In this document: piece by piece, positions 2,526-32,000 of the stretch | Numbering within the stretch: position 1 is the stretch's first letter | Layout of the letters: each line of letters begins with the position of its first letter | Assembly (NCBI GenBank): GCA_018985225.1 | Contig: JADGIF010000028.1 | Coordinates: 1,184 to 33,183 of the forward strand | Direction of reading: 5' to 3' | Source: Amoeboradix gromovi X-113 | Taxonomy: Eukaryota; Fungi; Sanchytriomycota | Length of the DNA stretch: 32,000 nt | Notes under the pieces: model-generated | The model's database searches: none | What the model was told of the DNA's origin: nothing | What the model saw: the letters and a program-made list of their open reading frames with translations, nothing else | Made by a program: the position numbers and the translations under genes

Positions 2526-2705
2526 CAATGCTTGTTTATTTCAAGGGAAACACGTCACATCTTATGACATGCAGCAAGCAAGATTTCAAAACAAGAAATA
2601 TGAAGGTCCTTTGTTTTGGAGTACTCTGAAAAAATACTTGGTAATCTATAATCCAATATGCGAGTTACCTGAGAAAAACTAGAAAAACTTCTAAAACAAA
2701 TGTGT

Positions 2706-3248
2706 CATCAAATATAAAAACTGGACTAACTTTCAGTAGCAACTTGGAACATTATTTCAGCTTTATTAATTTTATGGATTCAAGAGGCGAGTAGACATTC
2801 AGCTAGTTGCGGAGTTGACGAGTACAAAAGGAAAATAAATATTCTGTACAGCTATTCTCTTACTCTGTCATCCAATCTTTATCATAATACTAATTCATAA
2901 TAGGGTATATTTTCATTTAATCTTGCACATAAATAGAGACCTTTCCTAATAAAGTTATGGCCAAGAGAAAGCAAAAGCTTTCATACACCAGTTAATCAAA
3001 GAAATGTAGTGTCTGTGAGAATGAAACGAAGAAAGAGTACCGTCTAAGAAAATGCACCTTTTGCTTAGATGCTCAGAGACCTCATATATTTGAAAGAGAT
3101 GCAGGGTCTTCTAGTTTTATTTTAAAAAGAGGGACACAATCAATGAAAGAAAATTGTTATAATAGAAGATCTTTTATTAATGATAGCATTTCCTCTGTAT
3201 GGTGCACCTTTAAAAACGAGTTAGTCTAGTTTTTATATTTGGTGTCCC
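2706..3248. mobile_element. Non-autonomous TIR element (MITE), copy 1, both ends present
   Basis: Left end CATCAAATATAAAAACTGGACTAACT (2706-2731) is the inverted repeat of right end AGTTAGTCTAGTTTTTATATTTGGTGTCCC (3219-3248). AAATGTGT flanks both sides (2698-2705, 3249-3256). The left part recurs at 12634 and the right part at 31810. Confidence 0.9.
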
Positions 3249-3299
3249 AAATGTGTCATAAAGTAGAAGGACCCACACTTTATCGCATATGCTTAAGGC

Positions 3300-3800
3300 G
3301 GATACTCGTTGCAAATACCTCATCTCTCACTTTTACATCCCAGGCGGACGCTACTGCTGAATGGAATACATTACCTGAAGACGGTTGTAGCTTGCATTCA
3401 CATCTGTATCCGCGACTACACCTCACTAAGTATATGGCATTATCTTGGATCTCTATAGGATAGTAAGTCTCTTATAACTGCTATGGTTGTTGCATGATTT
3501 TGAAGTACAAAATTTTAAAGTAATTAGTGTTAGCGCTTTCCTTCCAAGAAAGTAGATCAGTTTCTTGTTTGACATACTTATGATCTCACCTACATTATAT
3601 TTTTATCTGGTTTCCCATGGTAAGCAACTTTCTTACGAAAACCCTGAGTAATAATCAAGATTATGGTCTAATTGGTACTTAAGCGTAATAAAAATATTTT
3701 GGTAGGATTTGTAAAACAGTACCTTTGTTTCTTTTTTGCTAGAAGTATATAGTTAGTATCACATCTGATGGCTTCTCTCTTTCATGAAATTGTTATAGTA
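3300..3800 (-). pseudogene. Degraded TnpB/Fanzor-family nuclease (Fanzor1-like), C-terminal part, locus A
   Basis: Manual minus-strand translation across stops and frameshifts: KKVAYHG...SNKKLIYFLGRKALTLITLKFCTSKSCNN ... T**GVVADTDVNASYN. This resembles the E-x-x-TSK-x-C, Zn-ribbon and D-R-D-x-N-A regions and is colinear with 30500-30960. Boundaries approximate. Confidence 0.65.
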
Positions 3801-4134
3801 GTCAATCCAATAATTTATTGAAACTGCCTCACAAGTTTGCAAAACCAAATATGCTCATAATTTTGAAGATAGATCGGAAATGAACCGACCAAAAAGCCCA
3901 ATACTATCCCGCGTACGTATTAAATTATATTAAATTATTTGTTACTTAAGTTACGCAACTTGTTATTATAAATTCCTTGTCTGATTTTTTATCACCATAA
4001 TTGGTTTCAGAATTTGTAATCAGTTCTTTAAATAAACGATTTTAATTTAGCCACACGCATTACCGCGTTTTGATGTATTCAATTTATATATATATACGAC
4101 ACATACTTCTAGGGAAACAGATTGTATTCAAGTA

Positions 4135-5072
4135 TTGACATCAGACACCTGTTTGGACAAAAGCATAAGGAAAGGAAGTCATCAGTATATTGCAGAGTCC
4201 GCTTCCAACGCCAGAAGGAAATATATTACCGGAAGAGGAAAGGAAGGACATCCACCAAGCCCCTTTCTACGGAAATCGGGTAAGAGTACATTGGTGTCGA
4301 ATGAACTTCAAGTTTACGAGGATGCATCCACACGCATCGTGTACAAGCTGGGACTAAGTAAGTGCTACTCTACAACAACGAGGAACGCACAGTGCGAATA
4401 CCAAGCACTCGTTCCAGCAAACGTTGTAGCGTCGGGTCCAGGCGTATGTATTTTCCAAGCGACATTATGACATAGACGGTTCAGTCACAATGTATGGACA
4501 CGAATGTCGGAGAGTGCTTAATGCACTTCATTTACGTATAGCCCATATGAATAGCGACATTGCAAATATTAGGAAACGTGGTAGATATACATCCAAAAAG
4601 AAACTACAAAAGATCAATAATAGAACAAAGAAGAAAACGCGGCTGTACCAAAGAATAGAAGATCCTACTACGACAATGCATTATGAGGTGAAGGATTCTC
4701 TGTGCAAGTATCTAGTGATCTTGCTTCCTGAGTTCGCGACGCAAGGAATGTCTCAAAAGTTACCAAATAATCACAAGAGAGATGCAGTCCTTAGACACTA
4801 AACATTAAAGTAGAGGCTGCCGCATAAATGTAAGTTTTACAATCAGAAATTGTTTATTATAAACGAGGTAAACTCTACTATTAAATGTTTTAGACGCAGT
4901 CACCAGTCGAGAGAAAGCATACATTCAAGACGATTCTAATGCATTAAATGAGGTCATGAACACCATAGAGATAATCAATCCAGTCAAAAATATGCTTAAA
5001 TGGTATCTACTCAAGTTGTCTACACTTAAGGAATGTGAACTCATTTATTTTAGATTTTCATATCTAGCGTAG
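4135..5072 (+). pseudogene. Degraded Fanzor/IS607-TnpB-like nuclease (Fanzor2-like), locus A
   Basis: Joined frames read DASTRIVYKLGLSKCY...NVVASGPGVCIFQAT/YDIDGSVTMYGHE (RuvC-I, Asp position now GGT at 4435), MHYEVKDSLCKYLVILLPEF, LFIINEVNSTIKC, CIK*GHEHHRDN (4940-4975), KNMLKWYL. Contains frameshifts and stops. Confidence 0.85.
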
Positions 5073-5209
5073 GCATCTAATTCCTTGCCTAGTTTTTACA
5101 GAACATGTCTGTTGTGTTTCAATAGGATTTAAAGGAAACAAGATCACATGCAAGAAGATAAGGACTGATAGATCAAGAAGAAGTCGAATGTATGTGTTTA
5201 ATTAAGCTT

Positions 5210-5446: not shown

Positions 5447-6190
5447 TTTCGAAATTGGAATTCCCCTTTTAATTTCAAGTCACCCTTTCAGTAGTATGAT
5501 CGGTTTTCACGTGAGCAGTTTATCTATCACCTTTAACTGCTTTTATTGCTTTAATTCATAATTTAAATGTCACGAGGTTCCAATTTATTATGAATTAAAT
5601 TCCAATATTTGATTTGAGTAGAATCGGTCACTGATTCTTGTAACATTAAAGACATGCTTTGAAAATTAGGAGGAAATGGAACACTATAAAACTAGACAAA
5701 CTTTTAAACAATTCTGTACAAGTACAACATCTTTTATTTATCACACGTGCTCTAGGTAAAGGCTCGCTGCTATTTCATCTCTCCTGTCATTCCAGTCTTT
5801 CGTTTTACTCATTAGGCATTGTATAACTTCAAGGATATTTAAAAATAAACCTTAATCTTCAAGTATTTTGCAATGGGGACACCAGCACAAGCTTGGACTT
5901 ATCTGAAAAAGTAGCACGTAAGATCAGCCTAGTTCATTACAATTTGATATGAATATTAAGAATCGCTTAATTTAGTCAATAGTGAAATTCAAACAGCTAT
6001 TGATATCAAGTTTTCATTCTACAGTGTTCCACGTAAAGCAGCAGTCATTTATTTTGAAGCCAAAAAGTGATTTTTTGCTAAAAATTCCGCAAACTAATTT
6101 TACGACCACGAATTTAAGAATAAATTTTTACTAACTCCTTTTTTAATTCAGATGGGCAATAGAAGTGTAGTCAACACAGTAAATGCGATT

Positions 6191-6496
6191 TTATACGAAA
6201 TAGGAATTCGCTACACGTTTTGCAAATTGAAGAATTTTAGTGGTTTTAGGATTGCAGGTCAGAGTGAAAACACCTTGGAATCTAGGACATCCACTAGTTA
6301 GATGTCTCACTTTCATATCTTTCCTCTGACCTGACTTCAGTGTCCTCTTACACAGCACACAACTTTTTGACGATCCATGTGTAGTCAATAGATGCCTTTT
6401 TAAGTCATACTTCCTGTCAAATTGCCTTTTACATAGCATGCAGTTATACATTTTGTTTACTAGAAACGCCAAGTCCATCTTAGAATGAGATGCCAT
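6191..6496 (-). CDS. Small C2H2 zinc-finger protein
   Basis: YNCMLCKRQFDRKYDLKRHLLTTH plus a second CVLC...RHLTSGC finger; short N-terminal MDLAFLVN motif. Confidence 0.8.
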   Translation of the reverse strand: MASHSKMDLAFLVNKMYNCMLCKRQFDRKYDLKRHLLTTHGSSKSCVLCKRTLKSGQRKDMKVRHLTSGCPRFQGVFTLTCNPKTTKILQFAKRVANSYFV

Positions 6497-12268: not shown

Positions 12269-12633
12269 TTACTTTTCGTCAGGCTTGATTTCCTTAAACA
12301 CCCTGCAATGCCTTTCAAAGTTAAATATTACATCTTTGACTGGATCTACGAATGTTTTGTTGTCAGACCTTAAGGGTATCCTACCGCCATAAGTGCAAGG
12401 CTTTGGGTCATATTTGCATTTGTTCATGTGAACCAGTAAATCATGTTTTCTCTTAAATCCTTTATTACAAGGACAAGTAAATGGCCTGACATCAAAATGA
12501 ACTTTGAGATGGGATACCATACCAAATCTGTTACTTCTTTCTACACTGCAAACCTCCCACTGACAACTACCGATGAAATTGCATTTTCTTCGATGGCCAA
12601 TATGATTAGCAAAATGGTTCAGAACATCCAAAT
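12269..12633 (-). pseudogene. PacC/Rim101-like zinc-finger gene, 5'-truncated at a MITE junction
   Basis: HIG...CQW..C...R..MVSHLKVHFDVRPFTCPCNKGFKRKHDL. The Cys pair of finger 1 is absent, and the first codons of the called ORF come from the TIR at 12634-12643. Confidence 0.75.
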
Positions 12634-12902
12634 GGGACATCAAATATAAAAACTGGACTAACTTTCTGTAACAACTTGGAACATTATTTCAGCTTTATTA
12701 ATTTTATGGATTCAAGAGGCGAGTGGACATTCAGTTACTTGCGGAGTTGACGAGTATAAAAGGAAAATAAATAACTTTTTGTATCGAAATTTCAAAAATA
12801 AATATTCTGTACAGCTATTCTCTTACTCTTTCATCCAGTCTTTATTTCAAATAGACCTCTGATTCATAGTACTAATTCATAACAGGGTATATTTTCATTT
12901 AA
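12634..12902 (+). mobile_element. MITE family copy 2, left end only
   Basis: Starts GGGACATCAAATATAAAAACTGGACTAACT and aligns with 2706-2920 apart from two internal indels; no right TIR seen nearby. Confidence 0.9.
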
Positions 12903-13279
12903 GAACTATCCAGAAAGAACTGGCAAGACAAGAGTCAGGGAGACTGTCCAGTTGGTCTTCAAAAGTTTTCTAATACAATTTCCGGGGCTTGAGGATTGGT
13001 GTAATAGGCATTGACATCTCGATTCAAATCCCCATTATAAATCACTTATTTTCATGCTGATTTACCTCCATTTATTATCTTTTTATAGTCTTTTATAATT
13101 GTATTTTATACAAATATCGTTCACAGTGCTATTATCTATGCAGATCCATTAAGCTTGTTAAAGCAGAAAATTACTGATTCTTGGTCTGACTATGGTGTCC
13201 ATTTGTACAAAAAATGCAGATTTAAAGCAAATCAAAAAATTTATTTGTTTTAATTATGCTTGGGTAGTACAATCTCTGC

Positions 13280-13771
13280 TTACCTTGGGCATTTGTATTT
13301 AGAGTTCAGACCTTGGAGAGAAAATTTGCTTTCAGCTCCAGGCAGCCGTCTAGATATAGCATATAGTTTACTAGCTGCAAGTAGGCCTTCCTTTGAGTAT
13401 CGCTTCCCGTCCTTGGATATTAGTAGTGCTTTCCTTCCAAGCTCCACTTGAGATATTATCTCTTTTAAAGGGTCTTTAAATTCTACCACCTTAATCTTTT
13501 CATCGTTACATTTTCTTTGATGAACTATTCTATCGTATTTTCTTTTAAAAGATTTTCCACACTTGCATGGAAAAGGTCTCACATCAATATGTACAGCTAT
13601 GTGGCTCACCATCGCCCCTCTTGTATTTTTGCGAACATTACATCCAGCCCATTTGCAGTGTGGTTTAAACGTATTCCTCTTTGGATACCCAACATGTCCC
13701 TCTACGTGTCCCAGTATCTCATCTTGCTCTTTGAAAGTCTTGTAGCAGTCCTCCCACTTACATATCATCAT
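13280..13771 (-). CDS. Short PacC/Rim101-like zinc-finger protein
   Basis: CKWEDC...H...HVG...CKWAGC....R..MVSHIAVHIDVRPFPCKCGKSFKRKYD matches the PacC three-finger layout, including the Trp in fingers 1 and 2. Confidence 0.85.
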   Translation of the reverse strand: MMICKWEDCYKTFKEQDEILGHVEGHVGYPKRNTFKPHCKWAGCNVRKNTRGAMVSHIAVHIDVRPFPCKCGKSFKRKYDRIVHQRKCNDEKIKVVEFKDPLKEIISQVELGRKALLISKDGKRYSKEGLLAASKLYAISRRLPGAESKFSLQGLNSKYKCPR

Positions 13772-14459: not shown

Positions 14460-16160
14460 TTATTTCCTTTTGATGTAACCAGGGCATAACCTAGTTAAAT
14501 CCTTTCTGTAAATATCTGGATAGAGTATGTACTGCCTCATATTCTTGTATATGGTAGGACACGAGTATAATGTGGGTGTCTTTATTATGCATTGAGCAGG
14601 TATTCTTTTATCTTTTGGAATGTATAATTCACCACTGCATACATCCCCATTAAATACCTGATCTGGCTCCATCACTGATCGTAACGCTGTGCTATCAATA
14701 TTCGCCAGCTGCTGCCCCAAGACCCTTACATCGTTTATGTCTGAATTGTTCAAAAATGAGTTGAACTTAACTACCACCTGCCTAACCTGGAGGACATTTA
14801 ATTCCAACTGTTTCATTTGTCCACTTACTGCAGTTGACAGCATAGTGCTGCATTCGCTCACAGTACAAGTACCATTAACCTTAACTAGATCAACCTGAGT
14901 GTATTCGCACTCTTTGGCATTCTTGTAGCATTGTTTCTTTGTCATTCCAAATGGTAGAAATATGAAAGATAGAAACCGACGAGTTTTAGAGCATGGCTGC
15001 TTGCAATCTTTCTTGTAGATTCGCTCAAATTGACAAACTTCCTTGGCATCATCTGTCAAAAGTCGGACAAACTTGCAAGTAGGATCCCTACATTCCTTGT
15101 TGACTATACGAGGGACTGCTACTTGCGACTGGGCTATGAATTGGTACTTAGGTTCTGCAGTAGTTTCATTGATATAGCCTTGATTAATCGGCTGATTAGG
15201 TACCTTGAATGTTAGCAAACATGAAGATGAGTCACTTTTTTTGATATTCGATGATAAAATGTACTTTTTCCACGAATTGTACCATAAATTGACCATGTTG
15301 GAGTAATGAACTTGGAAAGAATTGGCAAACTGGTAATACTTATTCGCAATGTCCTCAGTCGGCAAATTCAATCGTTTAGATAGTAAGTACCACTCTTTAA
15401 CTGCCATAAGCAAAATGGAAATAAATTGTGGGTATACTGCCACGGCGACGCTTACCTCATAGTATTCGAAATCTAGTTGATCAGTAACGCTTATAGGTAA
15501 CTTGTTTGCCAGCATTTCATTTGAGGTTTCAATGATCATACTTTCATAATTAGACACAATTTTAGTTGAAGACTGGTTAGACTGGAATTGATTTAGATAG
15601 CCAGTGATTATCCTAAGACTACGCTGTTGTTGTCCTTGGTATTGCTCTAGAAATCTGATATCCATTTTGTTGTCCATTAGCTCATTTAGAAAAGGCTTCA
15701 TGCTCATGAATGACTGATCTGGAGTAGGCAAGATCATGTTGACGAATTCCACAACTTGTTTAAATAGCTCAACGGGATCTAATTGAGGTGGGGGTTTATC
15801 ATCAAATAGCGTTTTGGAAAGCGTCATTACGGAACCCAGAACCATCCCTGGCATAGAACCGCTAAACATCAATAAAGTACTGGCTAGATCAAATGCACCA
15901 CCAAATAAGGCATTTGATCTGTCTTGTGACGATGCACTTTTATCGGATACACCTTGAATAGCAGTAGCAAGGCTAGGCGCCGAGAATGCTAATCCCATAG
16001 CCATTCCACTCATGTCTCTCCTACTTAATCGTCTGTCACGATTTTTTCGACATGATTTAGCTAAAATCGATCTTAACGGTGAATGCTGCCATCTTTTATT
16101 TGCGATCGCATTCTTCTGGTTTTCTGTTAATTGAGAATAGGACAGCATAAGTAGCAACAT
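14460..16160 (-). CDS. Secreted protein with putative delta-endotoxin (Cry domain I)-like helical region and Cys-rich C-terminus
   Basis: Short hydrophobic N-terminus, polybasic RDRRLSRR, a Gly-rich hydrophobic hairpin, and YYEVSVAVAVYPQ...IANKYYQ...HYSNMVNLWYN. The CDS is secure; the domain call is by eye. Confidence 0.6.
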   Translation of the reverse strand: MLLLMLSYSQLTENQKNAIANKRWQHSPLRSILAKSCRKNRDRRLSRRDMSGMAMGLAFSAPSLATAIQGVSDKSASSQDRSNALFGGAFDLASTLLMFSGSMPGMVLGSVMTLSKTLFDDKPPPQLDPVELFKQVVEFVNMILPTPDQSFMSMKPFLNELMDNKMDIRFLEQYQGQQQRSLRIITGYLNQFQSNQSSTKIVSNYESMIIETSNEMLANKLPISVTDQLDFEYYEVSVAVAVYPQFISILLMAVKEWYLLSKRLNLPTEDIANKYYQFANSFQVHYSNMVNLWYNSWKKYILSSNIKKSDSSSCLLTFKVPNQPINQGYINETTAEPKYQFIAQSQVAVPRIVNKECRDPTCKFVRLLTDDAKEVCQFERIYKKDCKQPCSKTRRFLSFIFLPFGMTKKQCYKNAKECEYTQVDLVKVNGTCTVSECSTMLSTAVSGQMKQLELNVLQVRQVVVKFNSFLNNSDINDVRVLGQQLANIDSTALRSVMEPDQVFNGDVCSGELYIPKDKRIPAQCIIKTPTLYSCPTIYKNMRQYILYPDIYRKDLTRLCPGYIKRK

Positions 16161-18655: not shown

Positions 18656-19143
18656 AAGTCAAGTTTCACTTCGTTTTGGTTTAGGGGACTCCTCGTTAAA
18701 AGTCCTGATATACGAGAAAAACTGGAAATACTGGTAAATAGGTCATTCTGAGTGCTCAAGCTTCTGCTGCCCTGATGTGGGAATCACGGGGATGTATATA
18801 TCAAGGATATGGTCTCAGCTTCCATAGGATTTCTATCCACTTGTAAATGACCACTTGACATGCGTCTAATATTTCCGCACATGCGAAGTCCTTGAAATAT
18901 CCCGTTTGCTTGCGGAGACTTCGCATACAGGGCGGTGTCTTTTGAGGAAGACGAGAAGACCTGAGCAGCGATGCCGTAGACTGACTTGTTCTAGCTAAAA
19001 TGACTTTGACATATGCCGCAGATAGAGAGAAAGAACGAGAAGACTCTTCAGGTAGGAACTTCTAGAGAAAGGAGATACTGTGGTGATGTGTTGTGTGTCA
19101 TCGCAGTAAATGGTAAATTCAACTAAACTCCCAAACTGTAACG

Positions 19144-22788: not shown

Positions 22789-23748
22789 TTAAATTGTAAC
22801 TGTTTCAATGAAATTAGCAGCAACTGGTGCGCAGAGATTGATTGTATTTATGGTTGTTACACACGTTAACTCTGAGTTTCTAAAATTCTTTCTGAAATAT
22901 TCGATTCTTTGAACCTGTCCCGGTGTGAATGAGGAGCGGCAGTTAGTGTAATCCATAAAATTCCCAATTAGATCATTTCCGGGTGTATTGGGACAAGTTT
23001 TAATAGCGGGCGCCACGCTATTACTGACACTGCATTGCCATCCCCATGAAGCTGCCTGCATTCCACTCGCTGCAGTTCTAGCAGCTTCGCTGACCACTGG
23101 CGTATCTAGCACATAATCACCATTTGGATCTTCACATCCCCCCTTAAATACATGTAGCAGTCCAAAGAAATGACCGATTTCATGAATCAGCGTCGTTGGG
23201 AGAACACTTGGTTTGTAGCTTAATCTTTCTGTGCTTATAACCACACCATCTAAGTCTAATGGTGAATCTGGGAAAGTAGACCAACTTACCGATGACTTCT
23301 TGCCTTTCCAAGTGTTCCAGGACCACTTGTGATACCCAGAATCTGCACTGTATATATTCAGCGTTTCCTTGCCCCCTTCCCTATGTCTTTTTTTAAATTC
23401 CTTTTCTGTGTTGGTTTCACAGCATTCAATATGCACCATACGCGGTTCGTTTATATAATCTATCTTTTTTAGTTGAAAATATATTGTAGTTTCCAAATAA
23501 GCCTTATTTAACATCATAATTTGGTGAACAACTGTTGCTTTATCCAACTTATGGTATTCTTTATCATGGATCACATGCCAAACGACAGGAATTATGTATT
23601 TTGGTGGGACTGTTACAGCCGGTGTTGTAGAAATAATCTTAGATCTCTTCTGCAGATTAAAGTTTGAAGGAACTTGAAATAGTATTGACTTGGAGGGAGT
23701 TCCTGTCATGCATACCGAGTGAGCGCTAACGAAATAGATCCACAGCAT
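22789..23748 (-). CDS. Secreted M43 (pappalysin/ulilysin-like) zinc metalloprotease
   Basis: IPVVWHVI, LNIY, DGVVI, HEIGHFFGLLH, DYVLDTP and Met-turn NFMDY; ATG at 23748. Confidence 0.92.
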   Translation of the reverse strand: MLWIYFVSAHSVCMTGTPSKSILFQVPSNFNLQKRSKIISTTPAVTVPPKYIIPVVWHVIHDKEYHKLDKATVVHQIMMLNKAYLETTIYFQLKKIDYINEPRMVHIECCETNTEKEFKKRHREGGKETLNIYSADSGYHKWSWNTWKGKKSSVSWSTFPDSPLDLDGVVISTERLSYKPSVLPTTLIHEIGHFFGLLHVFKGGCEDPNGDYVLDTPVVSEAARTAASGMQAASWGWQCSVSNSVAPAIKTCPNTPGNDLIGNFMDYTNCRSSFTPGQVQRIEYFRKNFRNSELTCVTTINTINLCAPVAANFIETVTI

Positions 23749-24241
23749 TTTTGAGAAAGGCAAAAGCTTGTTCTAATACTCCTTTGTAATAGTTGTGCAA
23801 TATGTGATACCCTAAAAATTCCTGCGGATCCTAATACGCTATTATCGTTTATGCTGGATTGAAGAATACATTCCGACTATGTTAAATGCGAAGATCTGAA
23901 ATAATCCAGAGTTTACATTTCTCAACTTTAAGACCTTGGTTTTCGCAAATGAAATATCAGCAACAGTTTCATCATTTAATTTTAAGTAAGTGCTCTAAAT
24001 TGGATGTAGTTATTCTTTACGTGATCTGTGTTAGATGTATTCCTTGATACCAAGTTATCTGATTTCCGAAATTCGATCCGTTACAAAGTGTACATAAAAA
24101 TAGCACAACCATCACACGATTACTTAAAGAACTGTTTGTTTGTGAAATCCCTGACTAGAGTTCATTGATCCAAACAAAGAATTCACAAATGAGAAAATGC
24201 TTATAAATCAAGGAGAATGGGTGAAATATCAAATTCAGAAA

Positions 24242-30389: not shown

Positions 30390-30499
30390 GCACTTACCTC
30401 AATAAAGTAAAAACTAAAAAGTTCAGTTATTCAGGCAGATATGTCCATACTTTATCGCCTACGCTTTAAGATAACCCATTGCTTCCGATTACTCTTCGT

Positions 30500-30960
30500 T
30501 GCGAGTCTAATCCTTCACAATTGCGCAGTAGATAGTGAATAGCCGTTGCTTACACATTCGGATCTTAATCTACGACTACACCGCATTTCGTGCACTGGCG
30601 TACCTCGGACCTCTGCTTATACTCTTATATTGCCATCGTTCCAAATGACAGCTGGCGCAATCTTGGGTTGTTTTAAACAGGACCAAGTAAGACTGATGAT
30701 CTTCTGCCAAATCAGTACACTGGTTTCTTGTTTAGGTTATTGCAACGCCCATTCAAGTTATTCTTGTAACTGCCGTCACGATAGTAAATCACTTTATTGT
30801 AAGGTTCTTTCGCTTTTTAATCTTGCTTAGCCGATTTCTTACGTTTTAATTGTTTTGGTAATTGATTTGAAATTGGCTTTGCTTGCGCTTAATATAGGTT
30901 TTAGTGTTAGTGCAAAATATTACATGCCTTAGATATTCAGGTAGAAATTAAAAATGAAGC
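30500..30960 (-). pseudogene. Degraded TnpB/Fanzor-family nuclease (Fanzor1-like), C-terminal part, locus B
   Basis: Minus-strand translation: IFNFY...TYIKRKQ...NKVIYYRDGSYKNNLNG...NKKPVY*FGRRSSVLLGP/FKTTQDCASCH...VRQCTKCGVVVD*DPN. Both CxxC pairs are retained; boundaries approximate. Confidence 0.75.
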
Positions 30961-31003
30961 ACACACCACTTTCAAACGGCTTTGGAATTCAAGTTGAAAA
31001 AGA

Positions 31004-31809
31004 ATGATTAATGAGTGCCATAGATTTGAGTTCGAGTTCAAAGGTGAAATATTTCATTTCGAACGAGAGTTAATGTTGGCAACGGAAAAAAAAATTTCAT
31101 CTGGATTTTTTCAAGAAAATAGGGCAATGAGATATCGGTGTCTAAAGAACCTTTGGTTTATCACGATGCATCAACAAGGATCATTTGTAAATCGTGATTA
31201 AACAAGTATTACTCTACAATAACAAGGAACATAACCTATGAAAATCAAGTAGAATCTCCAATAAATATTGTGGCACTAGACCTAGGCGTATGTAATCTTC
31301 AAGCTACATATTGGTATATACAGATCAATCACTTTTTATGGACGGGAACCAAAAAATACTTAATATTTTACGTTTGTGTTGATTATATTAATAGAAATAT
31401 TGCGGACACCAAGAAAATGCAAAGTATAAATCCAAACATAAATTGCAGAATATCAAAAATAGACAGCGAAGAAAGCATGTTAATACCTAGTAATTAAAGA
31501 TATCACTAAACAATGCATTGTGGTAAAAGTTTTTGCATAACTATTCAGTGATCCTATTGCCAAAATTCCAGGTCAAGAAACAAAAAAGTAACATACTAAT
31601 CACTAGAAACGTTATCATTTCAACATAACAAACTAAATCAGAGATTCTTGCAAAATGTAATTTTGATTGACAAGAATTTTTTATTATAACGAGGCCTAAT
31701 CCACTATTGAGTGTTAAAACACAATCGGCAACCGGAAAATGCTTAAATTCTAGGCTGTTGATTTTGGAGATCAGGACCATGGAGAAACATCCAGCGAGCA
31801 TTAGCATCT
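31004..31809 (+). pseudogene. Degraded Fanzor/IS607-TnpB-like nuclease (Fanzor2-like), locus B
   Basis: SKEPLVYHDASTRIICKS*LNKYYSTITRNITYENQVESPINIVALDLGVCNLQATY (RuvC-I Asp at 31279), YKSKHKLQNIKNR, YSVILLPKF and NEA*STIEC. Colinear with 4135-4990. Confidence 0.85.
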
Positions 31810-32000
31810 GGGACACCAAATATAAAAACTAGACTAACTCGTTTTTAAAGGTGCTCCATGGTATCATTAATAAAAGATCTTCTATTATACCAATTTTCTT
31901 TCATTGATTGTATTCCTCTTTTCAAAATAAAACTAGAAGACCCTGCATCTCGTTCAAATATATGAGATCTCTGAGCATCTAAGCAAAAGGTGCATTTTCT
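31810..32000 (-). mobile_element. MITE family copy 3, right end, inverted, runs off the window
   Basis: Starts GGGACACCAAATATAAAAACTAGACTAACTCG and is the near-identical reverse complement of about 3047-3248. Confidence 0.92.

Follow-up and report, generated by a model that had tools for sequence, protein, structure and literature searches.

Two decayed genes for Fanzor nucleases lie head to head in a 32,000-nucleotide stretch of the genome of the sanchytrid fungus Amoeboradix gromovi X-113 (assembly GCA_018985225.1, contig JADGIF010000028.1, positions 1,184 to 33,183 of the forward strand; hereafter, the window), and a second such pair lies near its other end. A sequence-only reading of this DNA proposed that both pairs are dead copies of a single mobile element that carried two RNA-guided nucleases of different subtypes. 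We asked whether the two genes were copied as a unit or whether separate transposons met at each place. We call the first pair locus A and the second locus B, the family of the minus-strand gene M, and the family of the plus-strand gene P. The assembly comprises 10.55 Mb in 1,319 contigs with about 36% GC and is gene dense, with fungal genes; labels consisting of C and a number denote contigs.

Extent of locus A and the reality of its junction

Locus A is a pile of transposon remnants that spans about positions 2660 to 5111, beyond both limits of the interval first proposed for it (3260 to 5072). That interval does contain the two coding remnants, but it cuts through the pile, and the sequence-only reading missed both a mini-element, T, and a fragment of a tnpA gene. 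We annotated the following features, in which TIR stands for terminal inverted repeat.

2660 to 2697, minus strand: decayed right TIR of M_A, severed from the rest of M_A by T; TIR profile match at 2659
2702 to 3248, plus strand: mini-element of family T, 547 bp, nonautonomous and Fanzor derived, with GGG..CCC-type TIRs and an AAAT duplication on both sides; many copies
3253 to 3332, minus strand: inner part of the M_A right end, the site of the would-be Fanzor1 omegaRNA scaffold; alignable to 12 further right ends of M
3290 to 3870, minus strand: Fanzor1 (M_A) coding remnant with helical region, RuvC-II, zinc finger, and RuvC-III; tblastn and profile matches for 3348 to 3602
3918 to 4015, minus strand: probable left subterminal region of M_A, so assigned from a match to L076 (67% over 115 nt, E = 3e-6)
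4016 to 4093, plus strand: left noncoding end of the IS607 element P_A, 70% identical over 80 nt to the left end of L002 and 71% to that of L013; first 25 to 30 nt or so beyond recognition
4113 to 4220, plus strand: IS607 tnpA serine recombinase fragment of 36 codons, 67% identical to the L002 TnpA (E = 4e-14)
4213 to 5042, plus strand: Fanzor2 (P_A) coding remnant, from WED/RuvC-I to the C terminus; 65 to 83% amino acid identity to L002
4960 to 5074, plus strand: P_A right end and candidate omegaRNA scaffold; 15 copies are conserved as far as GTAGGC (5074), where conservation breaks off sharply
5075 to 5111, minus strand: M-type TIR facing inward, directly outside P_A; found in TIR scans

The genome looks single-cell amplified (SPAdes names; PMC8371127), and the M/P junction might on that account be a whole-genome-amplification chimera or a misassembly. 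However, a single unitig of 1,279 nt, from a public run that is probably the source sample, covers positions 3232 to 4510, including the junction, with zero differences and at a depth of 23, similar to that of the unique flanks (26 to 33). Because one unitig without differences spans it at background depth, we conclude that the junction is real and single copy, and we consider an artifact scarcely credible. Joints that skip from T to the right end of P were considered as a possible empty allele and rejected; they derive from other loci where T lies beside P.

The termini of M and T are alike, with GGGACA-type ends and 4-bp duplications, and T itself carries a zinc-finger/RuvC-III remnant at 2996 to 3148 (Fanzor1 profile, E = 2e-4). 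With T removed, positions 2655 to 2701 joined to 3254 to 3340 align continuously to intact M right ends, with scores of 58 for L082, 45 for L033, and 51 for L027 against shuffle maxima of 32, 28, and 35, respectively. Since the flanks become continuous with intact M right ends once T is taken out, T was inserted within the right end of M_A.

M_A and P_A are adjacent on opposite strands. The inward-facing TIR at 5075 to 5111 is possibly the left TIR of M_A, in which case P_A would lie within M_A. The probable left subterminal region contains a TIR-like motif, at about 3968 to 3997, that is a near-direct copy of this TIR. We found no target site duplication (TSD) pairing this TIR with the right TIR at 2660 or flanking 2660 to 5111, and when P was removed in silico, the left end of M gave an alignment no better than the control. 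Since a TSD pair is missing and the test of continuity did not rise above the control, we infer the insertion of P_A inside M_A rather than observe it, and on balance we favor it somewhat. With the inward TIR outside P_A, locus A could be bounded by M TIRs and so, in principle, be mobile as a whole, which counts against a reading as independent insertions.

Identity and decay of the two coding remnants

The peptides quoted in the sequence-only reading are present in the DNA, and its assignment of the minus-strand remnant to Fanzor1 and of the plus-strand remnant to IS607-type Fanzor2 held. Fanzors have a C-terminal motif of the form D..[TS][TS]xx-C4 zinc finger..RD, corresponding to PF07282 (PMC3627910), and two fingerprints, a RuvC-I DPG and, in RuvC-II, a glutamate that precedes the zinc finger by six residues (PMC10711439). 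Both fingerprints are present in open members of M and of P. The open M members L074, L078, and L080 clear the PF07282 cutoff; family P matches the same domain, and its copy L002 also clears the cutoff.

The M_A remnant at 3348 to 3602 matched open Fanzor1-type frames of this genome by tblastn (41% over 85 amino acids to L074, E = 5e-11; 39% to the complete 734-amino-acid protein P0001, E = 1e-4) and by profile (E = 6e-12). The upstream part of M_A aligned to L076 and L055 at the DNA level, more weakly than the matches to 3348 to 3602. A DNA search with M_A as the query returned only M_A itself, and its relatives came from protein searches. P0001 has the motifs VDPG (RuvC-I) and EFRTSKLC (RuvC-II). 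A profile made from P0001 together with its relatives matched three Fanzor1 proteins of solved structure along the entire RuvC half (SpuFz1, E = 6e-35; GtFz1, 2e-28; PpFz1, 2e-24), whereas it matched mimivirus Fanzor2 and TnpB in the zinc finger only, at E values of 4e-10 or higher. By these profile scores, family M belongs to the Fanzor1 clade. Searches of the PDB with phmmer, using single M proteins or truncated P proteins, gave no matches.

M elements have TIRs of about 30 bp. In the solo M mini-elements L078 and L079, both TIRs are present along with 4-bp TSDs, and a 4-bp TSD was found in 6 of 11 two-ended M or T copies; AAAT is common, AAGT, GAGT, and ACTA also occur, and the M consensus is nearer ANNT than AWWT. 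The M subfamilies are strongly diverged, at about 50% DNA identity. Two complete open Fanzor1 genes with catalytic motifs, P0001 (734 amino acids; L080, on C1184) and P0002 (685 amino acids; on C363), belong to a divergent subfamily for which no more than about ten close relatives turned up in public metagenomes, among 1.8 billion representatives.

The P_A remnant at 4213 to 5042 matched the Fanzor2 of L002 by tblastn (E = 9e-62 and 5e-34). In L002, the Fanzor2 has the motifs LDPG (RuvC-I) and EAYSTIEC (RuvC-II), and upstream of it lies a TnpA that matches the Pfam Resolvase domain (E = 6e-17) and, weakly, MerR. The open homologue P0006 has mimivirus Fanzor2 (9B0L) as its best PDB match (E = 4.5e-15). 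IS607 elements lack TIRs and TSDs and have a dinucleotide crossover at their ends. Among P copies, the right end stops sharply at GTAGGC, and the left ends of three copies begin at GC. L002 (C459:9960-11975) is a near-complete IS607 element whose TnpA is open and whose Fanzor2 carries a single premature stop. L045 (C542) is another, with a tnpA upstream of a 672-codon open Fanzor2 frame that belongs to a second Fanzor2 family, Q. In L013 and L021, which form part of a P subfamily, the RuvC-III region of Fanzor2 contains a 19-nt insertion that starts with GT, ends with AG, and resembles a very short spliceosomal intron. At L004, four direct copies of an M-type TIR motif lie upstream of the P element within a span of 400 bp (L004:587-980), an arrangement that suggests subterminal repeats or stacked ends.

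Both genes at locus A are dead, as had been recognized. M_A lacks RuvC-I and the N-terminal half, has a lysine in place of the RuvC-II glutamate, and carries several stops and frameshifts. In P_A, a deletion of about 740 bp joins the tnpA fragment to Fanzor2 codon 324, the RuvC-I aspartate is gone (SGPG for LDPG), the RuvC-II glutamate is kept, and there are two frameshifts and four stops. Neither locus A nor locus B is now capable of Fanzor function.

Relationship between locus A and locus B

The same gene order and orientation do recur at 30410 to 31800, where P_B is fused mid-gene to M_B. The right TIR is absent at locus B, which runs into a T element at the contig end.

30410 to 30912, minus strand: Fanzor1 remnant M_B, of another M subfamily; right end without its last 35 nt or so
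30913 to 31800, plus strand: Fanzor2 remnant P_B, starting mid-gene and without tnpA; 3' end cut by T at 31810

On these shared features, one could propose that a composite dual-Fanzor element, with a divergent Fanzor1 and IS607-Fanzor2 and a guide at each end, once moved as a unit and that loci A and B are its decayed copies. The M-type TIR outside P_A would fit such an element, and a third head-to-head pair with similar spacing, on C421, might be a further copy. The halves of the two loci, however, have discordant nearest relatives. Over 699 columns, the identity between P_A and P_B is 63%, while P_A reaches 80% with L002, L003, and L004, three copies that have no neighboring M gene; P_B is 65 to 67% identical to its nearest copies. 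The identity between M_A and M_B is about 49%, close to the alignment floor, while M_B is 95 to 96% identical to L033, a solo copy without P that has the same stop codons as M_B. Loci A and B did not group in either the M tree or the P tree.

The deletions also differ, with tnpA codons 41 to 81 and Fanzor2 from residue 324 at A, Fanzor2 from about residue 270 and no tnpA at B, and tnpA codons 1 to 23 joined to a Fanzor2 tail at C421, a deletion unlike that of A. No DNA match was found between C421 and locus A or M_B. T sits in the right end of M at A and in the 3' end of P at B. Among the junctions of A, B, L010, L027, and L004, none aligned above shuffles except through the left end of P. An apparent similarity between the A and B junctions scored below shuffles, and L010, tried as a repeat of locus A, was ruled out by a host gene between its M and its P. 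The single-copy depth at the locus A junction also speaks against a composite element, as does the absence of M matches from the contigs of all 11 near-complete IS607 copies that carry tnpA. Moreover, the families differ in ends and in machinery, since P has a sharp right end and a TnpA that belongs to it, and solo M elements are flanked by TIRs and 4-bp TSDs.

These comparisons indicate that the M/P pair was not copied as a unit and that loci A and B arose independently; they are not even the products of one nesting followed by segmental duplication. We reject the dual-nuclease unit because both genes occur mostly solo elsewhere in the genome, because each half has closer solo relatives, and because there is no common junction; the first of these findings is an outcome that the sequence-only reading had itself named as a refutation. 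We regard an ancestral composite element as very improbable.

Candidate guide RNAs

Intact M right ends are predicted to fold, TIR included, into one long hairpin (z = -3.0, -3.4, and -1.7), and a structured right end is what is expected of a Fanzor1 scaffold (PMC10432273). An RNAalifold search for a consensus fold among diverged M right ends found none. The right end of M_A has no such predicted hairpin (z = +0.5). The right end of P has a conserved predicted terminal stem (z = -0.8 for the P_A copy), for which we found no covariation support. The proposal of a candidate guide RNA at each end of the pair was not confirmed, with the M right end split by the 547-bp insertion at A and lacking its last 35 nt or so at B. 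The would-be guide of P_A is an M-type TIR sequence. The 18-nt flank of P_A matched a single further site when two mismatches were allowed, and its reversed control gave no fewer matches.

Genome-wide frequency of M/P neighbors

The genome contains 145 M-type matches and about 135 M-type relics, along with 55 tnpA matches; P-type matches with an identity of at least 40% number about 80. PF07282 matches number at least 150 (150 scored among 560 candidates), mostly of family Q, and all these match lists are lower bounds. A genome of about 10.5 Mb thus accommodates no fewer than four families that carry Fanzors, two of them Fanzor1-derived TIR families and two of them IS607-Fanzor2 families.

Counting by hand from coordinate lists, we found five M/P pairs within 2.5 kb, namely, A, B, and C421 (head to head) and C644 and C1129 (tail to tail), versus 5.1 expected under uniform scatter; the fragmented assembly limits this survey, and for the pairs on C421, C644, and C1129 it rests on coordinates. 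Three head-to-head pairs compare with 1.3 expected (P of about 0.14). The uniform-scatter expectation is on the low side, since real elements crowd into spacers. Beside 27 other P loci, with flanks of up to 1.5 kb, we found T at 13, Q at 11, and a clear M right end at 1 (L027). M elements, too, host or adjoin T and Q at many loci.

When weak matches were included, about ten M/P neighbors were found, nearly all of them on opposite strands; most are head to head (A, B, C421, and L027) or tail to tail (C644, C1129, and L052), and one weak case is tandem. M/Q neighbors, unlike M/P neighbors, are often tandem. Points against independent nesting are the third head-to-head pair on C421, a fourth in miniature at L027, and the tandem share of M/P neighbors, which is below half of the roughly ten cases. 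The insertions could be independent and still not random, if IS607-Fanzor2 and Fanzor1 TIR elements preferentially enter each other on opposite strands through a target site bias or an RNA-guided conflict, with the flank of a nested element turned into a guide against the other family; the prevalence of opposite-strand neighbors and the M-type TIR sequence in the would-be P_A guide position both fit such a preference. Yet the neighbor total equals the uniform-chance expectation, P adjoins T and Q far more often than M, the P_A flank finds matches no more commonly than its reversed control, and a guide derived from the flank follows automatically from any nesting. The opposite-strand excess itself consists of small numbers, with A and B picked for their orientation and several matches weak. 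Because the cases are few, two of them were chosen by orientation, and several matches are weak, we hold this bias or conflict to be quite improbable, while a small surplus of opposite-strand M/P neighbors remains unexplained.

Other features of the window

Further transposon traces lie in other parts of the window. There is a short remnant of family Q at 18670 to 18857 in another spacer, a short remnant of a family P right end at 23877 to 23930 in another spacer, and decayed TIR-like motifs near 5678, 14389, and 21616. The left part of another T (12633 to 12923), 94% identical to the copy at 2702, overlaps the start of a zinc-finger open reading frame (ORF) at 12269 to 12643. This ORF is one of three short C2H2 zinc-finger ORFs on the minus strand (6191 to 6496, 12269 to 12643, and 13280 to 13771), two of which are paralogous. 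A 566-amino-acid ORF (14460 to 16160, minus strand) has a hydrophobic N terminus, a helical middle, and a Cys-rich tail; by eye, it recalls domain I of Cry toxins, and it had no Pfam match. A gene for a Peptidase M43 (pappalysin-type) metalloprotease lies at 22789 to 23763 on the minus strand.

Discussion

We conclude, with a probability of roughly 0.88, that three dead transposons inserted independently at locus A and now form a nested pile, all within a single spacer between genes of a compact genome saturated with Fanzors. One of them is M, a Fanzor1 TIR element with an internal deletion, which would have depended on a cut-and-paste transposase acting in trans and leaving duplications of 4 bp; judged by the element ends, this transposase may be Sola2-like. 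The T mini-element entered the right end of M. On the opposite strand, an IS607 element with tnpA and Fanzor2 abuts M or was inserted close to the left end of M, and later deletions would have fused tnpA to the 3' half of Fanzor2. Locus B would represent a second independent meeting, between members of other M and P subfamilies, that was fused mid-gene by deletion. In their active state, by analogy with known Fanzor systems, the right end of such elements would encode the omegaRNA scaffold and the flank would supply the guide, and an active nuclease would cut empty donor sites and so favor retention of its own element.

A more elaborate version would make locus A a TIR-bounded two-Fanzor unit of 2.45 kb, with IS607-Fanzor2 inside an opposite-strand Fanzor1 TIR element; either such nesting would be enriched genome-wide through a guide against the other family, or the unit would occasionally be mobilized whole. 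We think this unlikely. The evidence here does not call for a dual-Fanzor element, and M and P fit known kinds. In the collection of papers that we searched, we found no description of a dual-Fanzor element or of Fanzors in sanchytrids.

Fanzor1 genes occur in the Sola2-type elements DFa-1, DFa-2, and DFa-3 of Dictyostelium fasciculatum, which make 4-bp duplications (PMC3627910), and in Spu-1 of Spizellomyces punctatus, which has ghost loci and other transposable elements inside Spu-1 loci (PMC10432273). Sola2 elements are characterized by short TIRs, an AT-rich TSD of 4 bp, and, in autonomous members, a DDD transposase. Like DFa-1 to DFa-3 and Spu-1, M has a Fanzor1-type RuvC half, TIRs, a 4-bp TSD, many deleted nonautonomous copies, and a structured right end. 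It differs from them in its TIRs of about 30 bp, in its TSD consensus, in having no linked transposase here, in the strong divergence of its subfamilies, and in that the copy at locus A is dead and split. IS607-type Fanzor2 is represented by mimivirus ApmFz2 (PDB 9B0L; PMC10530073, PMC10711439). Family P resembles the mimivirus elements in its tnpA serine recombinase followed by Fanzor2, its DPG motif, its alternative RuvC-II glutamate, and its sharp right end. Unlike them, it resides in a fungal nuclear genome in dozens of copies, mostly deleted, and P_A retains only a fragment of tnpA and neither the REC part nor the RuvC-I aspartate.

Nested transposon clusters occur in gene-dense genomes, where insertions pile into older elements in scarce neutral space. 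Locus A departs from ordinary clusters of this sort in that all three participants derive from Fanzor-carrying elements. As a nested pile, it is ordinary nonetheless: a genome with hundreds of Fanzor relics easily yields apparent gene pairs. Some value lies beside the locus, in the coexisting Fanzor families of the genome and in its open frames for a divergent Fanzor1 subfamily (P0001 and P0002) and for Fanzor2 (L045 and P0006). If opposite-strand nesting were truly enriched, a guide-based conflict between transposon families would become testable.
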